A stretch of DNA of 63,862 nt, the filler included, from Hyphochytrium catenoides (Eukaryota > Protista > Hyphochytriomycota): NCBI GenBank assembly GCA_900088475.1. It is 14 parts of 14 records of this genome, joined end to end, with 100 filler letters (N's around TTAATTAATTAA, not from the genome) between each part and the next. Parts side by side here need not be neighbours in the genome. Positions count along the whole stretch, not along the records: positions 24,442 to 36,453 come from FLMG01001017.1; 13 more parts are not named here. The stretch is one strand, 5' to 3'. Numbering within the stretch: position 1 is the first letter of the stretch; every line of letters starts with the position of its first letter. The notes below the pieces were generated by a model that was given only the letters and a program-made list of their open reading frames with translations, had not been told where the DNA came from and searched no databases. This document shows positions 23,187-35,306 of the stretch, piece after piece. Made by a program: the position numbers and the translations under genes.

Positions 23187-24453
23187 AATATGCAGAGAGA
23201 GAGAGAGACAGGGGAGAAAGAAGCAAGAAACATGGAAATTTTTAGCACCAGACGATATATAGTGAACGAATAAAGAGAGGGCGCTTCTTCCCTCTCCCTC
23301 GGGGTATCTTTCTTTCTCTCTCTTTCCATAAGCTTTTTCCTTGATGGACGGTAGAAACGAGACAGAGCTCGAAGAGACTAAGTATAGGAAACGAAGAAGA
23401 AAAGGGAGACATGGCCTCTCTCTGGGGAGACATGGCCTCTCTCTGCTCTAAAAGCAGTAGATGAGCAAGCGGTGTGTCTTGGGGTTTCTCCCTGTGTTCG
23501 AGGCTGAGAGAAGCGAAAAGGAGAAACTCGAAGGACTATGAAGAGGAGAGAGAGACGTAAAACAAGAGAGCGAGAATGGAAAGTCAAGAGAGCGTTGAAA
23601 GAGAAAGGAGAGAAAGAGAGAGAAGAGAGAGAAAGAGAGGAGAAGATCAAACGAGAGAGTACTCTTGCTCGTCGATGGCTAGTTAGTGCCTCTTCATTAT
23701 TATTATCCTAGGCTGATTTCTGCGACCAGCTGGGAAAATAGGAAGAGATCTGGAAAAAAGGACAGAGAGAGAGAGTGGCGGCATGATCGGGCATTCTAAC
23801 GCTAACACAATCACAGGAAAAGGAGAAGAGAGAGAGGGGCAAGAGAGAGAGAGAGATAACCACTGCTTTTCCGCAATTACTCTTCTTCCTCCTCCTCGTC
23901 TTCTGCCGCTCCTTCCGTGACTGCCTTCTCTAGCCCAAGTTCGGTCTTGAGGCCGTCAAAGATAACGGAGTGTGTCCTTGGCGCCTGAGGAGAGAGAGAG
24001 AGAGAAATTGACAAACCAGAGTGAAAAAGAAAGAGAATAAGGAGAAGGAGGGAGGTAGAATCCAAAGAGAGAGAGAGAGTTAGAACAAAGACTGAGTTAT
24101 GGAAAAAATCCATATTCGTAGCTCACTCCTTCTCTCCTTCCTCATCCTTCCTCTCTGTTCCTCCTCCCTCTCTCTGTTCCTCCCTCCTTCTCTCTCTCTC
24201 TCGTTCTCTCTCTGTCTCTCTCTCTGTGTGTCCCGGAGCCTCTCTCTTTTTTCCTTTAAGCATGACCACTCTTTGCCTACCGCAGGGTTCCTCTTCCTGG
24301 GGTCCATAAGGTAAAGAGAGGTAAGGAGAGTGGCCAGTCCGNNNNNNNNNNNNNNNNNNNNNNNNNNNNNNNNNNNNNNNNNNNNTTAATTAATTAANNN
24401 NNNNNNNNNNNNNNNNNNNNNNNNNNNNNNNNNNNNNNNNNTTTCTCTCCCTT

Positions 24454-24512
<59 letters not shown>

Positions 24513-25500
24513 GCGTGTGTGCCTTCTGATGCGGTCCTGCTGTTGAACTGTCAAAGATTCTGATGAAAGATCTTTCACGAACAAAAGAAAGGAGAGAAAC
24601 AAAGCATTACAGCAGAGTCTACACTGCCGTTACCAGCTAGACATGTCAACCGCTAAACCCCACTATATTTTCTCCTTGAACCATAAACAACTAAAATGCG
24701 CCATAATACCTCTTGGCAATGAATAAAATAGGCGGTCATAGCAGATCCATATATGGACGATATGATTCACAATCAGGACGGCCCTGGATCGGCCGCCTGC
24801 TGTTTTATTAGGATAATTAGCACGACGAGCGCTGGGAAACGACCTTCCTCCCTCTTCTCCTCCTTCTGACAGCATCGCTGAGATACTTAGTGCTGTTATA
24901 TGTCTGTTGATGATGGAGACAGAGAGGAAGACGAAGAGTCACCAGCTAGGTCTTCCTCTTCTTCTGCCGTCGCTTCTTCTCCAAGAGTGATCGCTTCTTT
25001 CTCTCCAATTTGTTCCTTTCGTCTTCTTCTCGTTCTTATGAGTAGCCCGCGGTCTGTACGGGCGGCATTCTCTACTATAACTACGACCAGTGGTTGTCGT
25101 CATTATAAAAAGCAAGGTTGAGAAGCAGAAAGAAGTGACAATTAGCCAAGAACAGCGATGTTAAGGGAAGCACTGGGAACAATCGACACTTCGACACTAT
25201 AGCGAAAGAGAAGGGAAGACGCATCTCCTCTTCGTTCTTGGCCATCCTCATATAACGACTTGGCATGGCATTTGAGGACTAGGCAAAACAATTGGCTTGA
25301 ATGCCAAAACCGTCTTGTTGCATGATTGATTGCCAGATGGAGAGATTATAGGAAATGGCAATCAATGTTACTCTGGAGTTAAAAATATAGGACTTTGGAA
25401 TTGAAGCCTAGCAGGGAAGACGTACACGCGGTTACGATTCCTTCTATTCTTCCCCGTTCTTGGCTTTAGGTACATGGTTTCATGATGTTGCCGGCACTGT

Positions 25501-26541
25501 TCACTTCCTTCGTAGTGATCCATTGGAGGGAGATGATGGGATTACTGCGGGCGCTGAAGTCTCTTCCCAGGAAAGATGAGGAGAAGCTTTTGCGTCCTCT
25601 GTGTCGGGTGTGGGTATCTTTTCTGAGGTCGCTTCTAGAGCTGCACTCTGTTCTGGCGTCTCTGCTGCAAGAGTCTCATCCTCTTTCTCAGGAATGGTAG
25701 ACAAGTCTTCGTCGCTCGTAGCTTCATTAGATGGCGCGGTAGGCACTTCTTCCGCTGGCAAAAGAGGAGATACCGACCCCGTCTGAGTCTCGGAAATAGA
25801 AGAATCGTCATCATCTGACCACGAGAGAGCGATCTCAGCCTCTTCTCCAGGTGCCATCCTTCCTGCGTTCATAACCCTTTGTAGGATAAGGTCAAAGAGC
25901 CATCGCCCGTGGTTCTTTGGCAACATAGCAAACAGAGTGAGGATATCCTGTTTAAGAGCCTCTGAGCGGGAAGGAAGATCCAGAATGCCGAAGGTGGCAT
26001 AAGTAAGAGCATTCTTGAAAGCCTGGTTAGCACCCTGCGTCCATAGATCTCTGAAGAAGATCTTGATGGCCTCCACAAAGCCAGACTTCAGGAAGGCCCA
26101 AAGACCCTTAATCCCTCCCTTGCTAAGGGCATCAAAGATCTGTGTGATACCCCTCTGCAGATCAGGAGGAAGATTTCCAAAGATCTTTCTAAGCTGTTCC
26201 TGCTCTTCCGGCTTGAGGTGATCATAGATCTTCAGGAAGGTTTCGCGGCTAAACCTTTCTGTCTCTTCTGACGAGAGCACTCTTCGCTCGAGGTTAGGCA
26301 TCGAAAAGTCATCTTCCAGAAACAGCGTGAGGACGACCGCTGCCTCCTCATCAGTGAAAAAGTCAGAGCTCCTGTGAGCCTGTAGAGCTCGGACGACTGG
26401 GCTGTCTGCGTTATGCTGGATGTGGTACCGTGGCAGCAGGGCCAAGCTTCTATGTTGACGTTCTTCCGAAGCTGCAAAGGGAAAGATCGCGGTAGCTAAT
26501 AAAGCCACGAGGGCAAGGAGGAAGGCTGAAGTTGTCTTCAT
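25501..26541 (-). CDS. Secreted hypothetical protein, intronless, with a helical core and acidic low-complexity tail
   Basis: Long clean ORF. MKTTSAFLLALVALLATAIFPFAAS is a signal peptide. No family recognised. Confidence 0.75.
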   Translation of the reverse strand: MKTTSAFLLALVALLATAIFPFAASEERQHRSLALLPRYHIQHNADSPVVRALQAHRSSDFFTDEEAAVVLTLFLEDDFSMPNLERRVLSSEETERFSRETFLKIYDHLKPEEQEQLRKIFGNLPPDLQRGITQIFDALSKGGIKGLWAFLKSGFVEAIKIFFRDLWTQGANQAFKNALTYATFGILDLPSRSEALKQDILTLFAMLPKNHGRWLFDLILQRVMNAGRMAPGEEAEIALSWSDDDDSSISETQTGSVSPLLPAEEVPTAPSNEATSDEDLSTIPEKEDETLAAETPEQSAALEATSEKIPTPDTEDAKASPHLSWEETSAPAVIPSSPSNGSLRRK

Positions 26542-28333
26542 GGTGCTGACTGGGATATTGGCCGTTGATTGAAAGCAGACCCTGCAACGAACGTAGGTGT
26601 TGTGACTTCTTGGCAAAATGGGAAGTGATCGGGACGTAGCTTAGAAGAGAGCTCCAGGCACCTGAGCCTCAAAATCAGAGTTCTTAGAGTACTCGAGACC
26701 ATCCTCTACGTCCTCCATTAGACCAACCCTTCCAGTTCTTGCCTACCAAGCGGTCGGATGATGCATCATTGGCAGAGTTTGAATCTGTCAAAGTGCGGTC
26801 AGAGAGGCGGAGATTGGTCACAGACCGACTATTGAAAGGTCGCTTAGGCCACGATCTCACGGCATAATCTCGTCACTCTTGGGTGCTTACGACCTAGCAC
26901 AGAGCTGTAATAATAGATGGCAATTGACATCTGCCTCTCATTGCACATCATTTCTCTCATTTTGGCCCTCATCATCTCTTCGAGTGCTGTCTCTCTTCCT
27001 TGATGGACTACTGGGTGTCATCGTGGCCAAATCCTGAAATCTTGAGCCAGGTAGGTCTAGTCCTATCATCCCACACCACTGACCCAGCGCCTGCCTCCAA
27101 ACCAATGTCCTACTCTCCTCTTCTACTCTCATACTCGTACACAAGCTGCAGATATTCCTCTTCTTTGAATAACAAGTATGCCAGTCTCCCTGCTGAGATC
27201 ACTCCTCCTTCACAGCCCCTGCCCAGTCTACCCTTGGTCTTGATAAATGATGAGGCAGGAGGAGGACCAGCCAGCCAGCCAGCAGGCAGCATCACTGGGC
27301 GCCATCAGCCCTCAGCCATCAGAGTTGATGCCCATCAAACCTGCTGAAGATCTTATCCAAGGCTCCAGACAGTTCAACAACAAAATCCATCCTTTCCATC
27401 AGCCGCTTTTTTCCAGTGACCTGGCTCTCTTTTATAAAGCCTCACCAGGAATAAGAACAAGGTCCATTCTACTTTATAGTGAGTACCACTATTACAAGGT
27501 TCTATCTTGTTATTATTTCCTTAGGATAGTTATTATAATAATATTGAACCTCAGTAATAATAAACCAAAGTAAAGAGTTTGATAATGCAATTTCTCAAGA
27601 CCACTATTTGTCCCGCCACAACCCCTTCACTCCTAGCATAAAAGGACGGAAGAGTCAAAATGTATGGGCGGACTTTCCTAAATTTCTAAAAATTGCTTTT
27701 GGTCAGTTCTTAGTGTTAGACGATCTTCCACGGGTATATACAGTAAAGTCTTCATCATCGGCCGAAGGGTCGCGCCTACATAACCTTTGGTCTCTTACCT
27801 AATAAATAGTCTGATTGAGCCATCATTGATCTGGGTCTACAGCGTCCTCAAGAGGACATTCAGGACATAAGAATCGCCTCTCCTGCTGTTCATAGAGTAC
27901 GAGGAACTACGCTTACATTGTGCGGGAGAGACAGGGAGAGGAGAGAGGCTACGGACGAGGAAGGTGCCTGATCATAACGCCAACAGATAATAGCAGCGCT
28001 CTCTCAAACCGTCCATCGCGATATCGGTGCTTTTGGCTTGCTATCTATCAATGAACTGGTAGAGGAAAGAAGGCTAGCCTTTCTGTCTTCGCACGTTACT
28101 TTAGCTGACTTCATAGACGATAGATAGCAGAGCTGAACTGCTCCTCGCGTCGTTAGTTTGAGAGCGCCAGCCTTTATAACTGATCTGTTTGGCTAAAGCG
28201 TGGCTAGGGCCTCTTAAAGTCTAGAGGGAGAACACCGGGTAGGTGTCTATTAGATGCATGGGTCGGCAGTGTATGTCAGGAATGGGATCTGTTATCCCTC
28301 ATATTGAAAGCTGAATCAGAGATGCATCTTGTT

Positions 28334-31300
28334 CTACATCTCTGCCATAATAATAGAGCGAGGATTGTGGTCGTCCGCAGACTTTCTACTGCTTGCTTTT
28401 CTCTGACGGGCAGGTCGAGGTGGGGAAGAGCGAAGGACAAGCTCCTCAAGCGACTGAATGCGCTGTGCTAACTCTTCCAATCGGCGCTTCATGCTGCTGA
28501 CCTCCGCCTGACAGCTCTCCAGTTCCTCAGCTTGGGCTTTCACTGACTCTACAAGCACTGCAGAGAGCCGCGAATAGGCTACACCCTTAAAACCTTAAGA
28601 GGAGAGATCAGAACAGGACCAAGTGTCAGGAGCCGTTAGATTTGAGGGCAGCACTGGCCATCCACTTGAGCTGCAGAGGGAGCGCAAGCACGTTCCATCT
28701 CAAAGGCACGGCCCCAACTTAGTTCAAATGGGGTTCACGTCAGCCCTTGGAAGGTCAATGCCATGCTCTGCTCCGACCCCCCTATTTCTCTTATCTAGAC
28801 TTTCTCGGTAGAGCTCTTGGTGTTCCTCTCCTTATCTCACTCTGTCCTGCCCGCCCAACGCCAGCCTTTACAGTCTTTGTCCAAAGTGCGTACCTTTACT
28901 ATCTGTATGAACCACCTCAGGAAGAATTGCTTCCACCTGCTGCGCGATAAATCCGACCTCCACTGGCCTCTGTTTCTCATGTTGCGTTGAGGCTTCTCCA
29001 TCTATGTCTAACTCTTCCTTTTCTCCTTTGGCACGGTCTTTGAGGCGGTAGCGGACCCCTTGAAGCTTCTTTACAGCCTCAAGCGCTTCTCTACCGCTAA
29101 TATCTTGGATGTCTGTTTTTAGTCTGCGATCGCTACTATCAATGTATGCTCCGCTGCCGATCACTGGTCCATCAACGGAAAGATAGCCCGATATAAAGGC
29201 GCCTAAAGAGAGATCGTAACAGAAGCAAAGCAATGAGAGATAGCAAGCGACGGATCCATCCATGAATCATGCTTTCCCTTGTCCTATCATAGCCCTTCTC
29301 TCTCCCCTCGATCTTCATTCCCAGTCGAGGTATGTCTTGGCACTGCCACTTCAACTACCACCATTTCTGAGTAACAGATAATTCACTCGTTTCTTTTGCG
29401 TACCATTGGAGACTGCAATCATGTTGTCCACGGTAATATTCTTGGCCGCCACATTCACTCCTTGCATGGTTCCACCACGAATGTACGCGTTCACCAGCTC
29501 CGCTGTAGAGCTATCTATGGTGCCAGACAATCTGGAAGTGCGAACGCCTTCAACATGCAATGTATCTGACTAAAAGGTGATAACGAAAGGAAGGGACAGG
29601 TCAAGAAACTGCCTTGCTCAGACAAACTGGATTGTCCTTGAGTTCTCAGTTGCTCCTATCCATCCACATCATCTTGTCCCTCTTCAGGGGTATAACTTGT
29701 ATTCTCTTCTGCAAACACTCCCATTGGCTCAGATCACCCTACCTGCTCATCGAAAGAGATGCTTTCAAAGGCTCTAAGACGGCCCCCCTTGGAGAAGAAT
29801 GCGCCGATCAGTTTATCAGACGAAGGCACTGACCCAACCAGCAGGTCGTTTGCCTTGAAGGAGAAGGGACCTAACCAAGGTCAGCAAGGGTCAGAGAGTA
29901 CTCTGGGAAAGATGAAGAGGCATGGAGCGATAGGCTTAGCACCATGGGATTAAAAAAATATAAAGAAGGTTTGTGAATAAGGAAAATGCAGCTCCGTAGA
30001 TCTCAAGTTGACTGGCATAGAGTTTCAGTGCAAGGAAGGAATAAGGAAAATGCAGCTCCGTAGATCTCAAGTTGACTGGCATAGAGTTTCAGTGCAAGGA
30101 AGGAACAATAGAAAGCAGCCTGGCCGGCGTAGAATATACACGGCTATGGCCAAGACAAGGAAGCTAGGGGAGACAAGTCGCTTTACAGTTCAAGGAGCAG
30201 TATGATGGCTCGAAAGATGCAGGCAGACTTTCATCGAACGACTAGACAAGCGGTTAATGAGGTGCCCGACCTATATCCAGGTGGTTTGCTGCTGTGAGTT
30301 CCTTCACGGCTTGGAGCTTTCCATCGCCAACAGATGTGGCGGTCAATGGCCGCCAAAGCGTTCCATCGAAGACGAAGAGAACAGTCACACCTAGACGGAA
30401 GAACGTTTTGCAGGTAAAGTCAGGTGACCTCCCACCTCGTTCTACAAGCGTCCTTATTTTTGTAAATATCCCAATTCTGCCTCTGAAAGCAACCATCCTC
30501 TGATCCGCCTCTCTAAACAGGGTCGTACATACCTGCTGGAATGCTGTTTTTGGTTGCAGAGTCTAGCCCATCGTTCTTGTCGTTGTTCTAGGCGAGAGAA
30601 GAGGGGGAGAGAGCAACCAGACATTGGTCTTCCTTTTCCAACCGGGGTCATGCTCCTCCACTCGTAACGCTGGCACTTAGAATTCAACATCTGGGCGTCT
30701 TCTCTTATCGACATGGACTAGCTTTCACCCTTTTAGGAGAGAACCGCGTCCAGTAATGCTGGTTCTAAAAGGTTCTCTCCTGGATTTTGTCCTTTGCTGA
30801 CACGGCTTTTCTACTGTGCACTACTTCCTGGTTCGGAACCCTACTGACGCCTTTCGTTCCTGCACTCTCTTAGCGATTAGTTACCTGGACAAGGAGCAAC
30901 TGTCCCAATTTGGCGCCAGTTTTCTCAATCTGAACGGCCATTTCTCCGTCCTTGCCATCATCTTGGATGACCACGTAGCTCTTGTTGCAAGGAATAATCA
31001 AACGGCCATCCGGCCCACTGGCAAGTGATATCGAGGCGGATACGGACAAAGGTGGAAATACCATATGAAGAAAGAAAGATACGTTAATAGGCAATCTTGA
31101 AAGACAGACAGAAGAGGTCCACAGAGAAGTTGACTGGGTTCAATAACGGGACAGTCAGACTAGAAACAGTTGATGACCACTAAAATGACAGTTGAGAATG
31201 CACACCAAAATTGCTGAAAAAGACGTCCAACCTCGTGACAGTCCGCGGAGAGACAAAGTCGGGGATAAACACAGCTCTTCCTTCTGCAACTAGATCTCCG

Positions 31301-34300
31301 GCAGCGATGACTCTCTCTCCTCTCAATTTTCCGGTGGTAAATATCTCTCCGTTACTGCTTGCCCTTAGGACCAATTCCCCATTGACTCTTCCTTGCAAAA
31401 AGTCAAAGAGAGGAGTGTCTTTCCTAGTTGCCGAGGCGTTGGCTTCAAGCAATAAGCTGGTACCCACAAAGTTTGGGCTTCCGGCGGTCACCTGTATGCA
31501 TAGAAAGAGACCCAGCAGGTCTAGAGTTGGAAGAGGCCCCTCTAGGTAAATGGACGGAAAGCAAGCACAAATCGAGGGCGGTGATAAAGGGAAGATTGAA
31601 CTGATAGAAGCCCAAGGAGAGAGCAAGGAGGGGTACTTGCCAATATCCATTACCTTAAGCACTGTTGCTGCTGAAGTGTTGCTCCTTACGGTGAGCCCTC
31701 CGTCATGGATGGCAAAGCCTCCTCCTTCTATGGAAAGACCGCCGTTCTCGATTGTCAATCCCCCTTTCCCCACTCTAACGCCTCCCTCAGCTACAGCGAG
31801 TCCTCCAGATAGAAGCGAAAGGCCACCTGCATCTACGGATAACCCTCCGCTATGGATCTGTACTGCCCCGGATCGCCGAACCTCGAAGACCGGTTTGTTA
31901 TCAGCAGTCGCTTGAATTAGAACACCATTGCCTGGCCTGCGATGATTTGAAATCGTGATAGGAGCAAGCATAAGGGAGGCTGCCAAGGGGTACGGATGGG
32001 CAAAAAGAGAGTGGACAGATATCACGTCGAAGAAAGGCGCTAGGGTCAGAGATAGAGGTATGAAGTCCTGAGAGTGAAGTGTCGATGCAATTTTCCAGAG
32101 CAGAAGCCAGCATCATATGAAAAGAGGATATATCAGGAGGGCTATTTGAAGAGGAGAAGCGGGGAAAGGAGCTAGTGGGCTTACGCTGTTCCTGGCACTT
32201 TGATCTTCAGCACAGGTCCAGAAAAGTCCTTATGAAGGGCTTCTACTGCTAGTGAAGGAGCGTTGGAGGAGCTGGAAGAGAAAGTAGCCCGTCCATTCAG
32301 TACTTCAAGGGACCTGGAACAGGTGGTGAGTCGACCTATTGGTCTCCGTTTTATTTACCCCTTCATGCTCTTTTTACATATAGGCCCTCCACCTCCTTAC
32401 CCTTCGGATAGAGTGAGGCCACCTCTCTTCACTGCCACCTTCCCTTCCGTAGTAAGAGCAACCCCTGCACTATCTGGGCCTGTCAAAACAACGAGCAGGA
32501 GTATTAGACCAAACTGCCGGATGCAGAGAAGAAGCTGGCAAGTAACAAAGATCGACGGACGATGGAAAGGTAGCGGACCTGTCATGTCCTTGTAAAGAAA
32601 AGGAAAAGAAAAGCGTTAGGCACCCTCCTCCTACCGAAGGTGGCCCCTCCTTGGGACACTGTGAGACCCTCTCCAGCTACAATCCTTCCGCGGCTGGAGA
32701 GAGAAAAGATCGATTTCCCGTTTCTCTCCGCCGCTATGATATCGGACTCTTGGGGTTTGCCAGAGGTCGAAAGAGAAAGAAGAAGGGCTGGTCCCTGGTC
32801 CAGAGATTCGACTTCAAGCGCAGGCCCGGATAGTCTTCCCTGAGAGATTTTGGCTCCCCCTTCTCTGACCTCAAGCGCCGTGTGGCCAGGGGTCCCATAG
32901 ATTATGGCCGTCCCCTGAGACCATGGTGGCAGCCGAGGTAGGGAAGACAAGAAGAAGAAGAAGGACAGTTAAGATCAGTGATAACCTCCTGGGTCCTGGT
33001 CCTTGGCATGTCTTTAAGTTCTTTACCTTGCGGACTTCCAAGTCTCCTCTTTCAATGATTTGACCGCCCTACCGTAGGAATGAAGAGTTATGTTAGACAG
33101 GGAGGCTGAGATGGGTGCAAAGAGCGGACTACCTGCTTGATGACAAGGGAACCTCGTTGAAGGTTAAGATGTCCTTCTCCTGTCACTTCCACTACCGAGC
33201 CAGCCGCATTCTCCATTAGCAACATCCTATACGTTGATGACGGCTAGACAGGTGGGATGCGTTAGCAATCATGGTCGGCCTGCCCCTTGTTCTCTCTTCT
33301 TGCTAGCTTGTACCTGTCAGCTCTCTGGCAACTGCTTATGCTTCCTCCCTCTCTCCTTTCCCATCTCCTCTTCCTGCTGTCGCACTGTCTTTCTGTCAAT
33401 CATTCTCTGGCTCTCTTGTCTCTCACTCCCACACCCTCTCTTTATCTCTCGAAGTGCTCGTACCCATTATTACTCGAGCCTCGATAACCTTCTCTGTCAA
33501 TAGCTACTCCCTTCCCCATGGACGGCATTACCTCTCTGTCGGCTCTCACTCTCAGGACAGAGCCCTCAAAATATGGACTATCAGCGTGTGCGAGGAGCTT
33601 TTCTCCTTTGTCCAAGTTATCTCCACAGGCTGCCCCGCGAAATCCCTTCTCACAGAGGCATCGTCCTGTCTTCGGATCACAAGCTCCATGCTTTGAACAG
33701 CTGAGGTAACCTAACGAAGGGGAAAGGGTCAGTATATTAAAAATGCAAATAAAATGCTCTTAGATCGTGAGAGTCAGAGGACAGGATTTAACCCAGATAA
33801 TTGGGCGACAGGAGAGACATAAAGCGGCGCTAAGGGCGGTACAGCCTAGCGTGAACGCTGGCATTAGGTAGACAAATGTAGAGAACTGTGGATAGAGTGA
33901 TGCTGAAGACTTGGTAGGAACGACGAGAAAGCGAGCAAAGGAATATTGGAAATGTAGAGAAAGAATTGGGCGACGATGGGAAGGCAAGCAGTTTGAAGAA
34001 CCCTTTACGGGAGCTCAGGACAACAGAAGGTTGGATGGCCGAAGGTGGGGGGTGGATGACGGACGCAGCGGACGTTCAAAGACCTTACGTACCAAGGACT
34101 CCGTCCTTGACGACGTCTTCTATCTGGCACTTTATGCCTAGCGGGTTTCCATATCCATTGTCGTCGTACTCGCATGAGAAGTGAGAGAGAGGTGGGTTGC
34201 CCTCATGGTAGTGTACGTTATTCATCATGGGGCTCTCTGGGTAGGAGAGTAGAGTAACCAGGTAGCTGCCCGTGCCTTTTGCAGCGTCAAAGGATTCTCT

Positions 34301-35306
34301 GACGCAGCGCTGGGAGAGAAAGATGCAACCAAGGAAATAAGGAGAGAGCTCAATAATGCATATAACTTGCGAGACAAAGGGAACCAACGAGGAATGTCGC
34401 CCGGTAGGGAACTACAGACAGCAAAGAGCTAGAATAAAACTTCGAAGATTCATGAGCCGCGAGCCAAAGAAAGGCAATCTGCTTATTCTAATCTAGCTAG
34501 CAGTGGCCAGAACACGCAAACAGACGGAGAGGAGAGGAGAGGCAACAGTTCGAGCACGCCTTAGCTGGCATTCCTCATGATGGTGAGGAGACTCTGGAAG
34601 GAAATCAAGGGAAGACGGAGATCCTTGCGACACCTACCAGACCATTAACTGTCTCAAGTCTCCGAAGGCTGGCAGTGCACGCCGAGTCCCCAAGCTTGGA
34701 GGCGTTAGCCTCAAAGTAAACGTTGTCCATACCGAAGGTAAAGCGGAAGAGCCCCGTGATCGCGTCTGCGCCGCTTGCAATGGAAGTCTTGAGGCGAATA
34801 GTGCGATGGTTGGTCTCCGTGGCGAAAGGGTCAGGACCTCGGGGACAGAGCTCTGGAAGCGAAAACGAAGTGTAAGTGGCAGGTAGAGAGAGACCCGCGA
34901 GGGCCAGAGGAAAAAAGAGCCCGGCAGAAAGAGTAAAAAGTCCAGCAGTGAAGGTCTAGCTAGTTCTTAGAAAGGAGTTGACAGAGCAGCAGGTGTGGAC
35001 GAGGGAGAGCGAACATACAGACAGGGGATAGCGATAGAGGATGAGGCCGCCGCCCTTAGAGTTACGACGATAAACGAGTGGAGGCAAGGTAGAAGTTCCC
35101 TTTGTGCTATGCACGACGACGAGCTTACTTTCAGAGCAGTCATCGGTCACATAACCAGCCTTGCAGATGCATCCCGTATCCGTGCAGAAGCCATTGCCAC
35201 TGCAATCGTTGGGGCACACCGCCCCTTCAGCCACCGCCCAAAGCAGTGAAAGGGACAGAATAAGGGCCCATCCGGCCATCCTTCGGCCTCTGACTTGCCA
35301 TGCCAT
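28334..35306 (-). CDS. ~1,050-aa secreted protein: EGF-like modules + Gly-Gly beta-repeat stalk + C-terminal Peptidase S74/intramolecular chaperone autoprocessing domain + coiled coil (18 exons)
   Basis: Phase-compatible GT-AG exons (approx.): 35306-35129, 34852-34639, 34309-34093, 33710-33532, 33243-33133, 33068-33027, 32916-32635, 32479-32401, 32313-32185, 31936-31654, 31491-31232, 31017-30885, 30587-30533, 30391-30272, 29869-29743, 29570-29403, 29201-28894, 28593-28334. Motifs: CPNDCSGNGFC..GCICKAGYVTDDCSEKLCPRGPDP; CSKHGACDPKTGRCLCEKGFRGAAC; SSDRRLKTDI...VGFIAQQVEAILPEVV...GVAYSRLSAVLVESVK. Confidence 0.85.
29975..30105. repeat. Perfect 64-bp tandem duplication within an intron
   Basis: GAATAAGGAAAATGCAGCTCCGTAGATCTCAAGTTGACTGGCATAGAGTTTCAGTGCAAGGAAG begins at 29975 and again at 30039. 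Confidence 0.9.

Follow-up and report, generated by a model that had tools for sequence, protein, structure and literature searches.

A predicted secreted fibre protein of Hyphochytrium catenoides ending in a phage-type ICA domain, and its stramenopile-wide family

A 63,862-nt stretch of DNA from Hyphochytrium catenoides (assembly GCA_900088475.1), referred to here as the window, carries in its part FLMG01001017.1 (positions 24,442-36,453) a gene for a long EGF-containing protein that ends in a Peptidase S74 (ICA) domain, the self-cleaving chaperone of phage tailspikes and fibres. The product is likely to be a secreted, probably homotrimeric fibre protein, one of a stramenopile-wide family, that is folded by its ICA domain and then cleaves itself. 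To our knowledge, the ICA domain is understood in two settings only, namely phage tailspikes and fibres and the MYRF/MrfA transcription factors. The stramenopile family is a third setting, that of old, secreted, eukaryotic fibre-like proteins, and by analogy the domain seems to keep its original job in them: to fold a trimeric fibre and then to leave. Our best reading is that the ICA domain acts as it does in phages, by folding a trimeric fibre that is secreted. The family occurs in crop and fish pathogens (Phytophthora, Pythium, Aphanomyces, Saprolegniales) as well as in major algal groups. It offers a tractable test of whether fibres can be assembled phage-style within the secretory pathway of eukaryotes, and is a candidate for a surface structure of stramenopile swimming cells.

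The gene was rebuilt by a splice-site and frame search guided by a family profile made from 21 full-length relatives. Three-frame translation of the minus strand gives a run of coding-looking segments from 35306 down to 28334, in a piece of approximately 50% G+C. With every stop-to-stop segment of the piece as target, 16 segments matched the profile (E=5e-37 to 0.05), strictly collinear in both profile and DNA, and adjoining matched segments were joined at GT..AG pairs that preserve the frame. The small exon 12 was added by comparison with relatives; it encodes a conserved 'QN.D...' motif and mends the phase between exons 11 and 13. The resulting model runs from an ATG at 35306 to a TAG stop at 28336-28334 and has 16 introns, all GT-AG and of 87-400 bp. 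The predicted coding sequence of 3102 nt contains no internal stops and encodes 1033 aa. A preliminary description of this DNA had given the same outer coordinates, which are exact in the rebuilt model, but its 18 exons become 17 and its approximately 1,050 aa become 1033. The junctions of lowest certainty are exon 4/5 (33532 to 33243), exon 10/11 (donor GTTGGA) and the exon 13 donor (GTCGGG). The gene and its exons are as follows:

28334..35306, minus strand: whole fibre gene, ATG to stop, 17 exons
35306-35129, minus strand: exon 1
34852-34638, minus strand: exon 2
34309-34093, minus strand: exon 3
33710-33532, minus strand: exon 4
33243-33133, minus strand: exon 5
32914-32635, minus strand: exon 6
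32479-32401, minus strand: exon 7
32313-32185, minus strand: exon 8
31936-31654, minus strand: exon 9
31491-31232, minus strand: exon 10
31017-30885, minus strand: exon 11
30587-30533, minus strand: exon 12
30390-30271, minus strand: exon 13
29870-29743, minus strand: exon 14
29569-29404, minus strand: exon 15
29202-28894, minus strand: exon 16
28593-28334, minus strand: exon 17

The frame of exon 1 is also open for approximately 130 codons upstream of the chosen ATG (35307-35699, minus strand), with more in-frame ATGs. The start was kept at 35306 because the relatives begin with a signal peptide (the next ATG is at 35279). An Rfam scan of the piece gave no match.

The claim that all these parts belong to one gene is borne out by single proteins of many species, some of them transcriptome-derived, that are collinear with every part. 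Two neighbouring genes, one for an EGF protein and one for an S74 protein, could have been wrongly joined, given a gene model predicted from DNA and the existence of short EGF-only relatives such as the 555-aa Ectocarpus model CBJ33559. That model, however, is a truncated version of the 1732-aa protein known from Ectocarpus sp. 6, and more than 20 relatives have both ends, one of them transcriptome-derived (P0199, MMETSP). In the window itself, the frame is open through 17 phase-compatible exons, of which 16 have cores collinear with the family profile and the other, exon 12, was found through the relatives. A wrong joining is thus very improbable. A chance match is excluded because of the collinearity of the 16 exon cores and because dozens of single proteins span exon 1 to the last exon. 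On these sequence comparisons, the fibre gene is confirmed as one real gene.

DNA variation gives a separate view of the same model. The fibre locus is present in three DNA runs of the same organism, with allelic bubbles at approximately half depth. Among the 40 listed single-nucleotide polymorphisms (SNPs) between or within these runs, beyond which there are 31 further variant places, 10 are in exons, five of them synonymous. Exons make up 44% of the stretch, and SNPs are therefore rarer in them than expected (binomial P=0.009). All indels (7/7) are in predicted introns (P=0.016). This variant pattern supports the exon model and purifying selection, and the gene is judged functional.

Linked clusters of variants at approximately half depth were also seen in runs X1 and X2, with contigs breaking there, at 29573-29605, 30748-30815, 31987-32052 and 33631-33716. 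They suggest a heterozygous diploid with its two haplotypes, or else a mixed culture. Moreover, intron 13 contains a perfect 64-bp tandem duplication (29975-30105, 2.0 copies), which is polymorphic, one X3 contig joining 29974 to 30039 in a single copy.

The architecture previously described (signal peptide, two EGF modules, Gly-rich beta stalk, S74/ICA domain and coiled coil) was recovered in full in the rebuilt protein. The C-terminal features, from which the proposed function derives, are as follows:

28894..29134, minus strand: ICA/Peptidase_S74 core, exon 16, residues 868-948 (Pfam PF13884)
28593-28556, minus strand: continuation of the ICA domain, exon 17, residues 948-960
29132..29134, minus strand: Ser868 codon, predicted nucleophile and first residue of the predicted released fragment (gene model)
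29117..29119, minus strand: Lys873 codon, predicted general base (invariant K in the family alignments)
28436..28555, minus strand: coiled coil, residues ~961-1000, then a hydrophilic basic tail (weak coiled-coil family matches)

The S74 exon scored 64.9 bits (cut-off 22, E=8.2e-18) against PF13884, the check that had been proposed for it, and covers profile positions 1-58/58. The Ser (29134-29132) and Lys (29119-29117) codons earlier assigned to an S-D-R-R-L-K motif are exactly Ser868 and Lys873. The S, D, R and K of the motif, SDxR[LF]K in the family, are invariant in alignments of 22, 12 and 36 relatives, which argues for retained catalysis as a prediction. In 3gud, the cleaved phi29 gp12 chaperone (SDERHKTDI), the residue aligned with Ser868 is the first one, and the motif is likewise in register with 6f45 and 7dc3. 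From Ser868 to the C-terminal end there are 166 aa. Among PDB sequences, the exon matched the MYRF ICA 7dc3 (E=0.002) and, more weakly, 6f45 (SSDRRIKKDI) and 3gud. In PHROG, 28 families of tail fibres, tailspikes and baseplates matched it (best E=7.5e-15), in every case through their C-terminal ends. An AlphaFold2 (AF2) model of the Achlya orthologue from knob to end (36 relatives aligned) gave a pLDDT of ~90 for the ICA domain and terminal helix, and >90 for the coiled coil, which forms one continuous helix. Compared with solved structures, the modelled ICA domain matched 7dc3 (E=7e-6, TM-score 0.67 by target), 3gw6 (E=1e-3) and 3gud (probability 1.0). By this modelling, the ICA fold is confirmed for the Achlya orthologue, a stand-in for the window protein, in which the fold is predicted.

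The absence of a C-terminal transmembrane segment was likewise seen in the rebuilt protein, which has no hydrophobic 19-residue window outside the signal peptide and has a hydrophilic C-terminus. The Pfam scans, which showed EGF and S74 only, agree with the earlier statement that there is no DNA-binding domain; no NDT80/PhoG-type domain was found in the exons of at least 37 aa (exons 7 and 10 scanned inside longer open reading frames; exon 12, with 18 aa, not included).

Upstream of the ICA domain, three beta-rich regions and a repeat array were delimited:

31232..33243, minus strand: Gly/Ser/Ala-rich beta stalk, exons 5-10, residues about 264-644 (composition; collinear profile matches)
31681..31848, minus strand: eight tandem 6-8-residue GGLxVxx repeats, residues 493-548, exon 9 (GG motif starts)
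29743..31017, minus strand: conserved 'knob', exons 11-14, residues about 645-789 (profile E=6e-9, 3e-9)
29135..29569, minus strand: pre-ICA beta segment, residues about 790-867, exon 15 and start of exon 16 (profile match)

The stalk is rich in Gly (15%) and Ser (11%) and contains no Cys. Its exon 9 repeats have GG motif starts at residues 493, 500, 507, 514, 521, 528, 534 and 542, and their Gly positions are invariant across 12 relatives; they gave a weak, non-significant match (E=0.093) to the beta-helical trimerisation domain PF21930. The knob is marked by the motifs SYVxIxDDG, GQLLLVQN, FVFDGxxW and ELTAANxLDIG, and in the Achlya orthologue it was modelled as beta strands with a pLDDT of 68-85. 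In the same orthologue the monomer model of the pre-ICA region had a pLDDT <50; this may be as expected if the fold needs the trimer, though it is no proof.

These regions bear on whether the protein is a fibre at all. The ICA domain might only trimerise or fold the chain without cleaving it, or the protein might be a globular multidomain adhesin rather than elongated; the lack of phage-fibre homology outside the ICA domain and the unreliable stalk model would fit either possibility. Against this, the Ser, Asp, Arg and Lys of the motif are invariant across distant relatives, which argues for retained catalysis, and approximately 380 residues are Cys-free and Gly-rich, with eight GGLxVxx repeats of family-invariant Gly. 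We give this alternative a small probability only, and prefer the elongated, self-cleaved fibre.

The N-terminal part of the chain comprises the following features:

35226..35306, minus strand: signal peptide, residues 1-27 (MAWQVRGRRMAGWALILSLSLLWAVAEG), from hydropathy, followed directly by AVCPNDC
35136..35216, minus strand: EGF-like module 1, Cys31 to Cys57 (Pfam EGF_Tenascin, E=2.2e-5)
34093..34852, minus strand: beta domain between the EGF modules, exons 2-3, residues ~60-204 (profile E=1.2e-15, 1.8e-22)
33625..33699, minus strand: EGF-like module 2, Cys208 to Cys232, exon 4 (Pfam)

The signal peptide is the only 19-residue Kyte-Doolittle window above 1.5 in the protein, and in all complete relatives the first EGF Cys is immediately preceded by a leader of similar hydrophobic character; the cleavage site in the window protein was placed by eye only. 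The N-module proper (residues 28-262, 16 Cys) consists of EGF1, a beta domain of ~145 residues and EGF2. EGF1, in exon 1, scored 24.8 bits with EGF_Tenascin, just below the cut-off of 25, and its Cys positions are invariant or nearly so across the family. EGF2 exceeded the cut-offs of EGF_Teneurin (29.8 vs 24.3 bits), EGF_2 (29.7 vs 22.1) and EGF_laminin (22.1 vs 21). The beta domain of exons 2-3 matched no family in a Pfam scan. An AF2 model of the N-module from the closest relative, P0184 (34 sequences aligned), reached a pLDDT of 92, with no match to solved structures at E<=1e-3. Matches of this model to phage baseplate and sheath proteins (TM-score 0.25-0.35) were non-significant and were rejected. 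In the AlphaFold DB and ESM Atlas, the fold was found in the family itself and in many shorter stramenopile proteins of about 250-650 aa, annotated as 'EGF-like domain-containing', from oomycetes, Ectocarpus and Cafeteria. As judged from these models, the N-module is a stramenopile module common to the fibre family and to smaller secreted proteins.

The gene is no special case of its genome but one of a stramenopile-wide family, whose members already have database entries labelled 'hypothetical', 'EGF-like' or 'Peptidase S74 domain-containing'. When the S74 exon was searched against 1.84 billion representative proteins, 1192 matches were obtained, none above 52% identity, from which it follows that the organism's own protein is absent from that library. 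When these matches were aligned back onto the piece by tblastn, many single proteins spanned exon 1 to the last exon in order, and over 40 full-length proteins match every part of the window protein collinearly. Full-length relatives were found in Tribonema minus, Pelagophyceae sp., Epipyxis, Chlorochromonas danica, Pythium oligandrum and Achlya hypogyna. Further relatives come from Phytophthora fragariae, P. nicotianae, P. cactorum, P. capsici, P. ramorum, Globisporangium, Lagenidium, several Aphanomyces species and a Paraphysomonas transcriptome. All named full-length relatives are stramenopiles, and Pfam scans of the relatives found EGF and S74 both present. In blastp comparisons with the relatives, residues 4-1019 of the window protein are covered. 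The closest relative is only ~35% identical, and the lineage of the window is therefore not represented in the protein libraries. A literature search found no paper on an EGF-stalk-S74 family of stramenopiles.

In a full-length tree (37 proteins, 955 columns; a quick search with SH-aLRT support only), the window protein branches as sister to the oomycete clade as a whole (SH-aLRT 99), in which Saprolegniales and Peronosporales are grouped; Ectocarpus and Tribonema, the chrysophytes and the pelagophytes form the other groups. The window protein and the oomycete proteins also have in common a short spacing between knob and ICA domain. An older 'long' paralogue with many more stalk repeats (P0194, P0195, P0199-P0203; 1200-2500 aa) is present in oomycetes and in a chrysophyte, from which it follows that the family duplicated before these two lineages split. 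Taken at the level of sequence, these results indicate old, vertically inherited cellular genes across the stramenopiles rather than a viral insertion of recent date.

The gene might be suspected of having come in recently from a giant algal virus or a phage, or of being contaminating DNA, since S74 is typical of phage fibres and is also present in giant algal viruses, including the Heterosigma akashiwo virus of a stramenopile host. Against this origin stand the 16 spliceosomal introns, a family tree that mirrors the stramenopile species tree, and the allelic variants of the locus in the three DNA runs. In addition, an IMG/VR scan with the knob-to-ICA alignment matched the ICA part only (residues 205-323/345). 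Such an origin is extremely improbable, and we retain that of an old cellular gene. The ICA domain on its own is less informative: a tree of 198 sequences and 127 columns was unresolved, needs at least 8 changes of the family label and names no donor, and many of its 'other' rows are probably fragments of the stramenopile family. The dense introns of the window gene, 16 in number, are peculiar to its lineage. The Tribonema gene has one exon for residues 1-785, and the Phytophthora gene, judged by its length, has <150 bp of intron in total. A comparison with the Tribonema and Phytophthora genes found no shared intron positions as a sign of an old cellular gene.

Pfam finds two Peptidase_S74 domains (2 stretches) in one chain in P0004 and the proteins of its cluster (JGI metagenome, 1605 aa), an unusual arrangement for a domain whose normal place is the extreme end of the chain, from which it removes itself.

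The comparison with known systems places the protein closest to its uncharacterised relatives, such as Achlya OQR93941, Pythium oligandrum TMW58446, P. nicotianae F441_20154, Tribonema KAG5188017 and Pelagophyceae KAJ1455740. These have the whole architecture, with all exons collinear, at ~28-35% identity, and the window gene differs from its Tribonema and Phytophthora counterparts by its 16 introns. With the ICA proteins of phages (K1F endosialidase 3gw6, phi29 gp12 3gud, T5 L-shaped fibre 4uw8, S16 long tail fibre 6f45), it shares a C-terminal position after a beta-rich fibre, an S-D-x-R-x-K motif with the Ser-Lys pair, a GFIAQ.VE..P..V core and a terminal helix. Unlike the phage fibres, it is made from a spliced nuclear gene, carries a signal peptide and EGF modules, has a stalk and knob without detectable similarity to theirs, and would fold in the lumen of the endoplasmic reticulum (ER). 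MYRF of animals and MrfA of Dictyostelium are likewise eukaryotic ICA proteins, and MYRF 7dc3 is the top PDB match of the window protein by sequence and of the Achlya orthologue's model by fold. Unlike these, the window protein has no NDT80-type DNA-binding domain and no transmembrane segment after the ICA domain; it would be lumenal or secreted rather than cytosol-facing, and the part kept would be the fibre. In giant algal viruses (Heterosigma akashiwo virus HaV53_86, a 1529-aa HaV-MAG protein with an FhaB domain, and prasinoviruses), the S74 chaperone also ends a long, beta-rich putative adhesin in a eukaryote-associated genome. By their descriptions, those proteins are set apart as viral and intronless, with no EGF/beta-domain/EGF arrangement reported.

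By analogy with the phage proteins, we propose the following course of assembly. The chain would enter the ER, where the EGF disulfides would form. Three C-terminal ICA and coiled-coil segments would associate and set the register, and the stalk and pre-ICA strands would then adopt a trimeric fold, as phage tailspikes and fibres do. Ser868, activated by Lys873, would cut the 867/868 bond, freeing a soluble fragment of 166 aa. The mature fibre would retain ~840 aa per chain (residues 28-867), with three EGF heads at one tip and the knob at the opposite one, and would be exported to the cell surface or to an extracellular structure. It may serve in adhesion, in a surface coat or in a swimming-stage structure.

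Proteomic data from Phytophthora parasitica zoospore membranes, the only expression evidence brought to bear on the family, are relevant to the last of these roles. Nine peptides of PPTG_14518, an 812-aa EGF-like protein with a predicted signal peptide and the Gene Ontology term 'protein autoprocessing', were recovered there (PMC12223298, supplement 1). Its counts were 6, 5, 5 and 5 in the cell body vs 1, 3, 9 and 5 in flagella, hence no flagellar enrichment, while PnMas1-3 were enriched in flagella 3.2- to 5.6-fold in the same data set; the order of the cell-body and flagella columns was read from the paper's statement of PnMas flagellar enrichment (PMC12223298). The literature search found PPTG_14518 in no paper's main text. 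Hence, swimming-stage cells make a protein that carries both annotations, and the flagellar-hair hypothesis gains no support.

According to that hypothesis, the family would be part of the tubular flagellar hairs (mastigonemes), for example their terminal filaments or base. Tubular hairs form in the ER or perinuclear space, their building blocks being secreted EGF-like proteins (PnMas1-3, Sig, Ocm), and the mastigoneme proteins (Sig1, Ocm1-4, PnMas1-3) resemble the window protein in being secreted and stramenopile-specific, with EGF-like domains and without any transmembrane segment. The restriction of the named full-length relatives to stramenopiles speaks for a place in the hairs, as do the known properties of PnMas1-3, which are secreted and EGF-like and lack a transmembrane segment (PMC12223298), the recurrence of the N-module fold in many stramenopile EGF-like proteins of 300-650 aa, and the occurrence of the Phytophthora EGF and autoprocessing protein in zoospore membrane preparations. 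On the other side, PPTG_14518 differs from PnMas1-3 in lacking flagellar enrichment, and name, fold and literature searches turned up no source name or paper that ties the family to mastigonemes. Compared by description only, the mastigoneme proteins are also shorter (227-598 aa in P. parasitica), with no S74 reported. We regard membership in the hairs as quite unlikely. Unlikely, too, is a broader reading in which the family forms an extracellular fibre, specific to stramenopiles, of their swimming or settling cells (hair terminal filaments or base, or adhesive surface fibrils) that would be built in the ER by a self-cutting phage-type chaperone. If true, this would be the first structural fibre of a cellular eukaryote known to be made in this way, and older than the oomycete/ochrophyte split.

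In the same zoospore membranes, PPTG_17386 and PPTG_17414 are annotated as trimeric-autotransporter-adhesin head (GIN) proteins, the latter being higher in flagella; GIN is another bacterial-type adhesin module in stramenopile swimming cells (PMC12223298).

Several points count against the reading of the window protein as a self-cleaved, trimeric secreted fibre. The splicing of the gene is predicted from sequence: the sequencing runs listed for the organism comprise three DNA runs and three tiny unrelated runs, and no RNA run. The structure models are those of relatives (P0184 and Achlya P0007) and not of the window protein itself. The stalk exons matched no family in Pfam or PHROG, so that the 'domesticated tail-fibre system' proposed earlier is detectably phage-like only in its ICA domain (and, in orthologues, in the strands just before it). 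The stalk may form three separate helices or one triple beta-helix, the monomer model being unreliable in this region. That the protein trimerises, resides in the ER and cleaves itself is inferred from the ICA family, and PPTG_14518 was placed in the stramenopile family by annotation only.

Finally, two neighbouring features were observed in the same piece:

25501-26616, minus strand: intronless open reading frame, 346 aa from the first ATG at 26541, with signal peptide MKTTSAFLLALVALLATAIFPFAAS
24444-24512: (TC)n microsatellite of ~34 copies, at the edge of the piece

For the 346-aa open reading frame, neither a Pfam family, an Atlas relative nor an exact record elsewhere was found. The C-terminal third of its product is acidic and rich in Ser, Glu and Thr, and it looks like a lineage-specific secreted protein encoded downstream of the fibre gene on the same strand.

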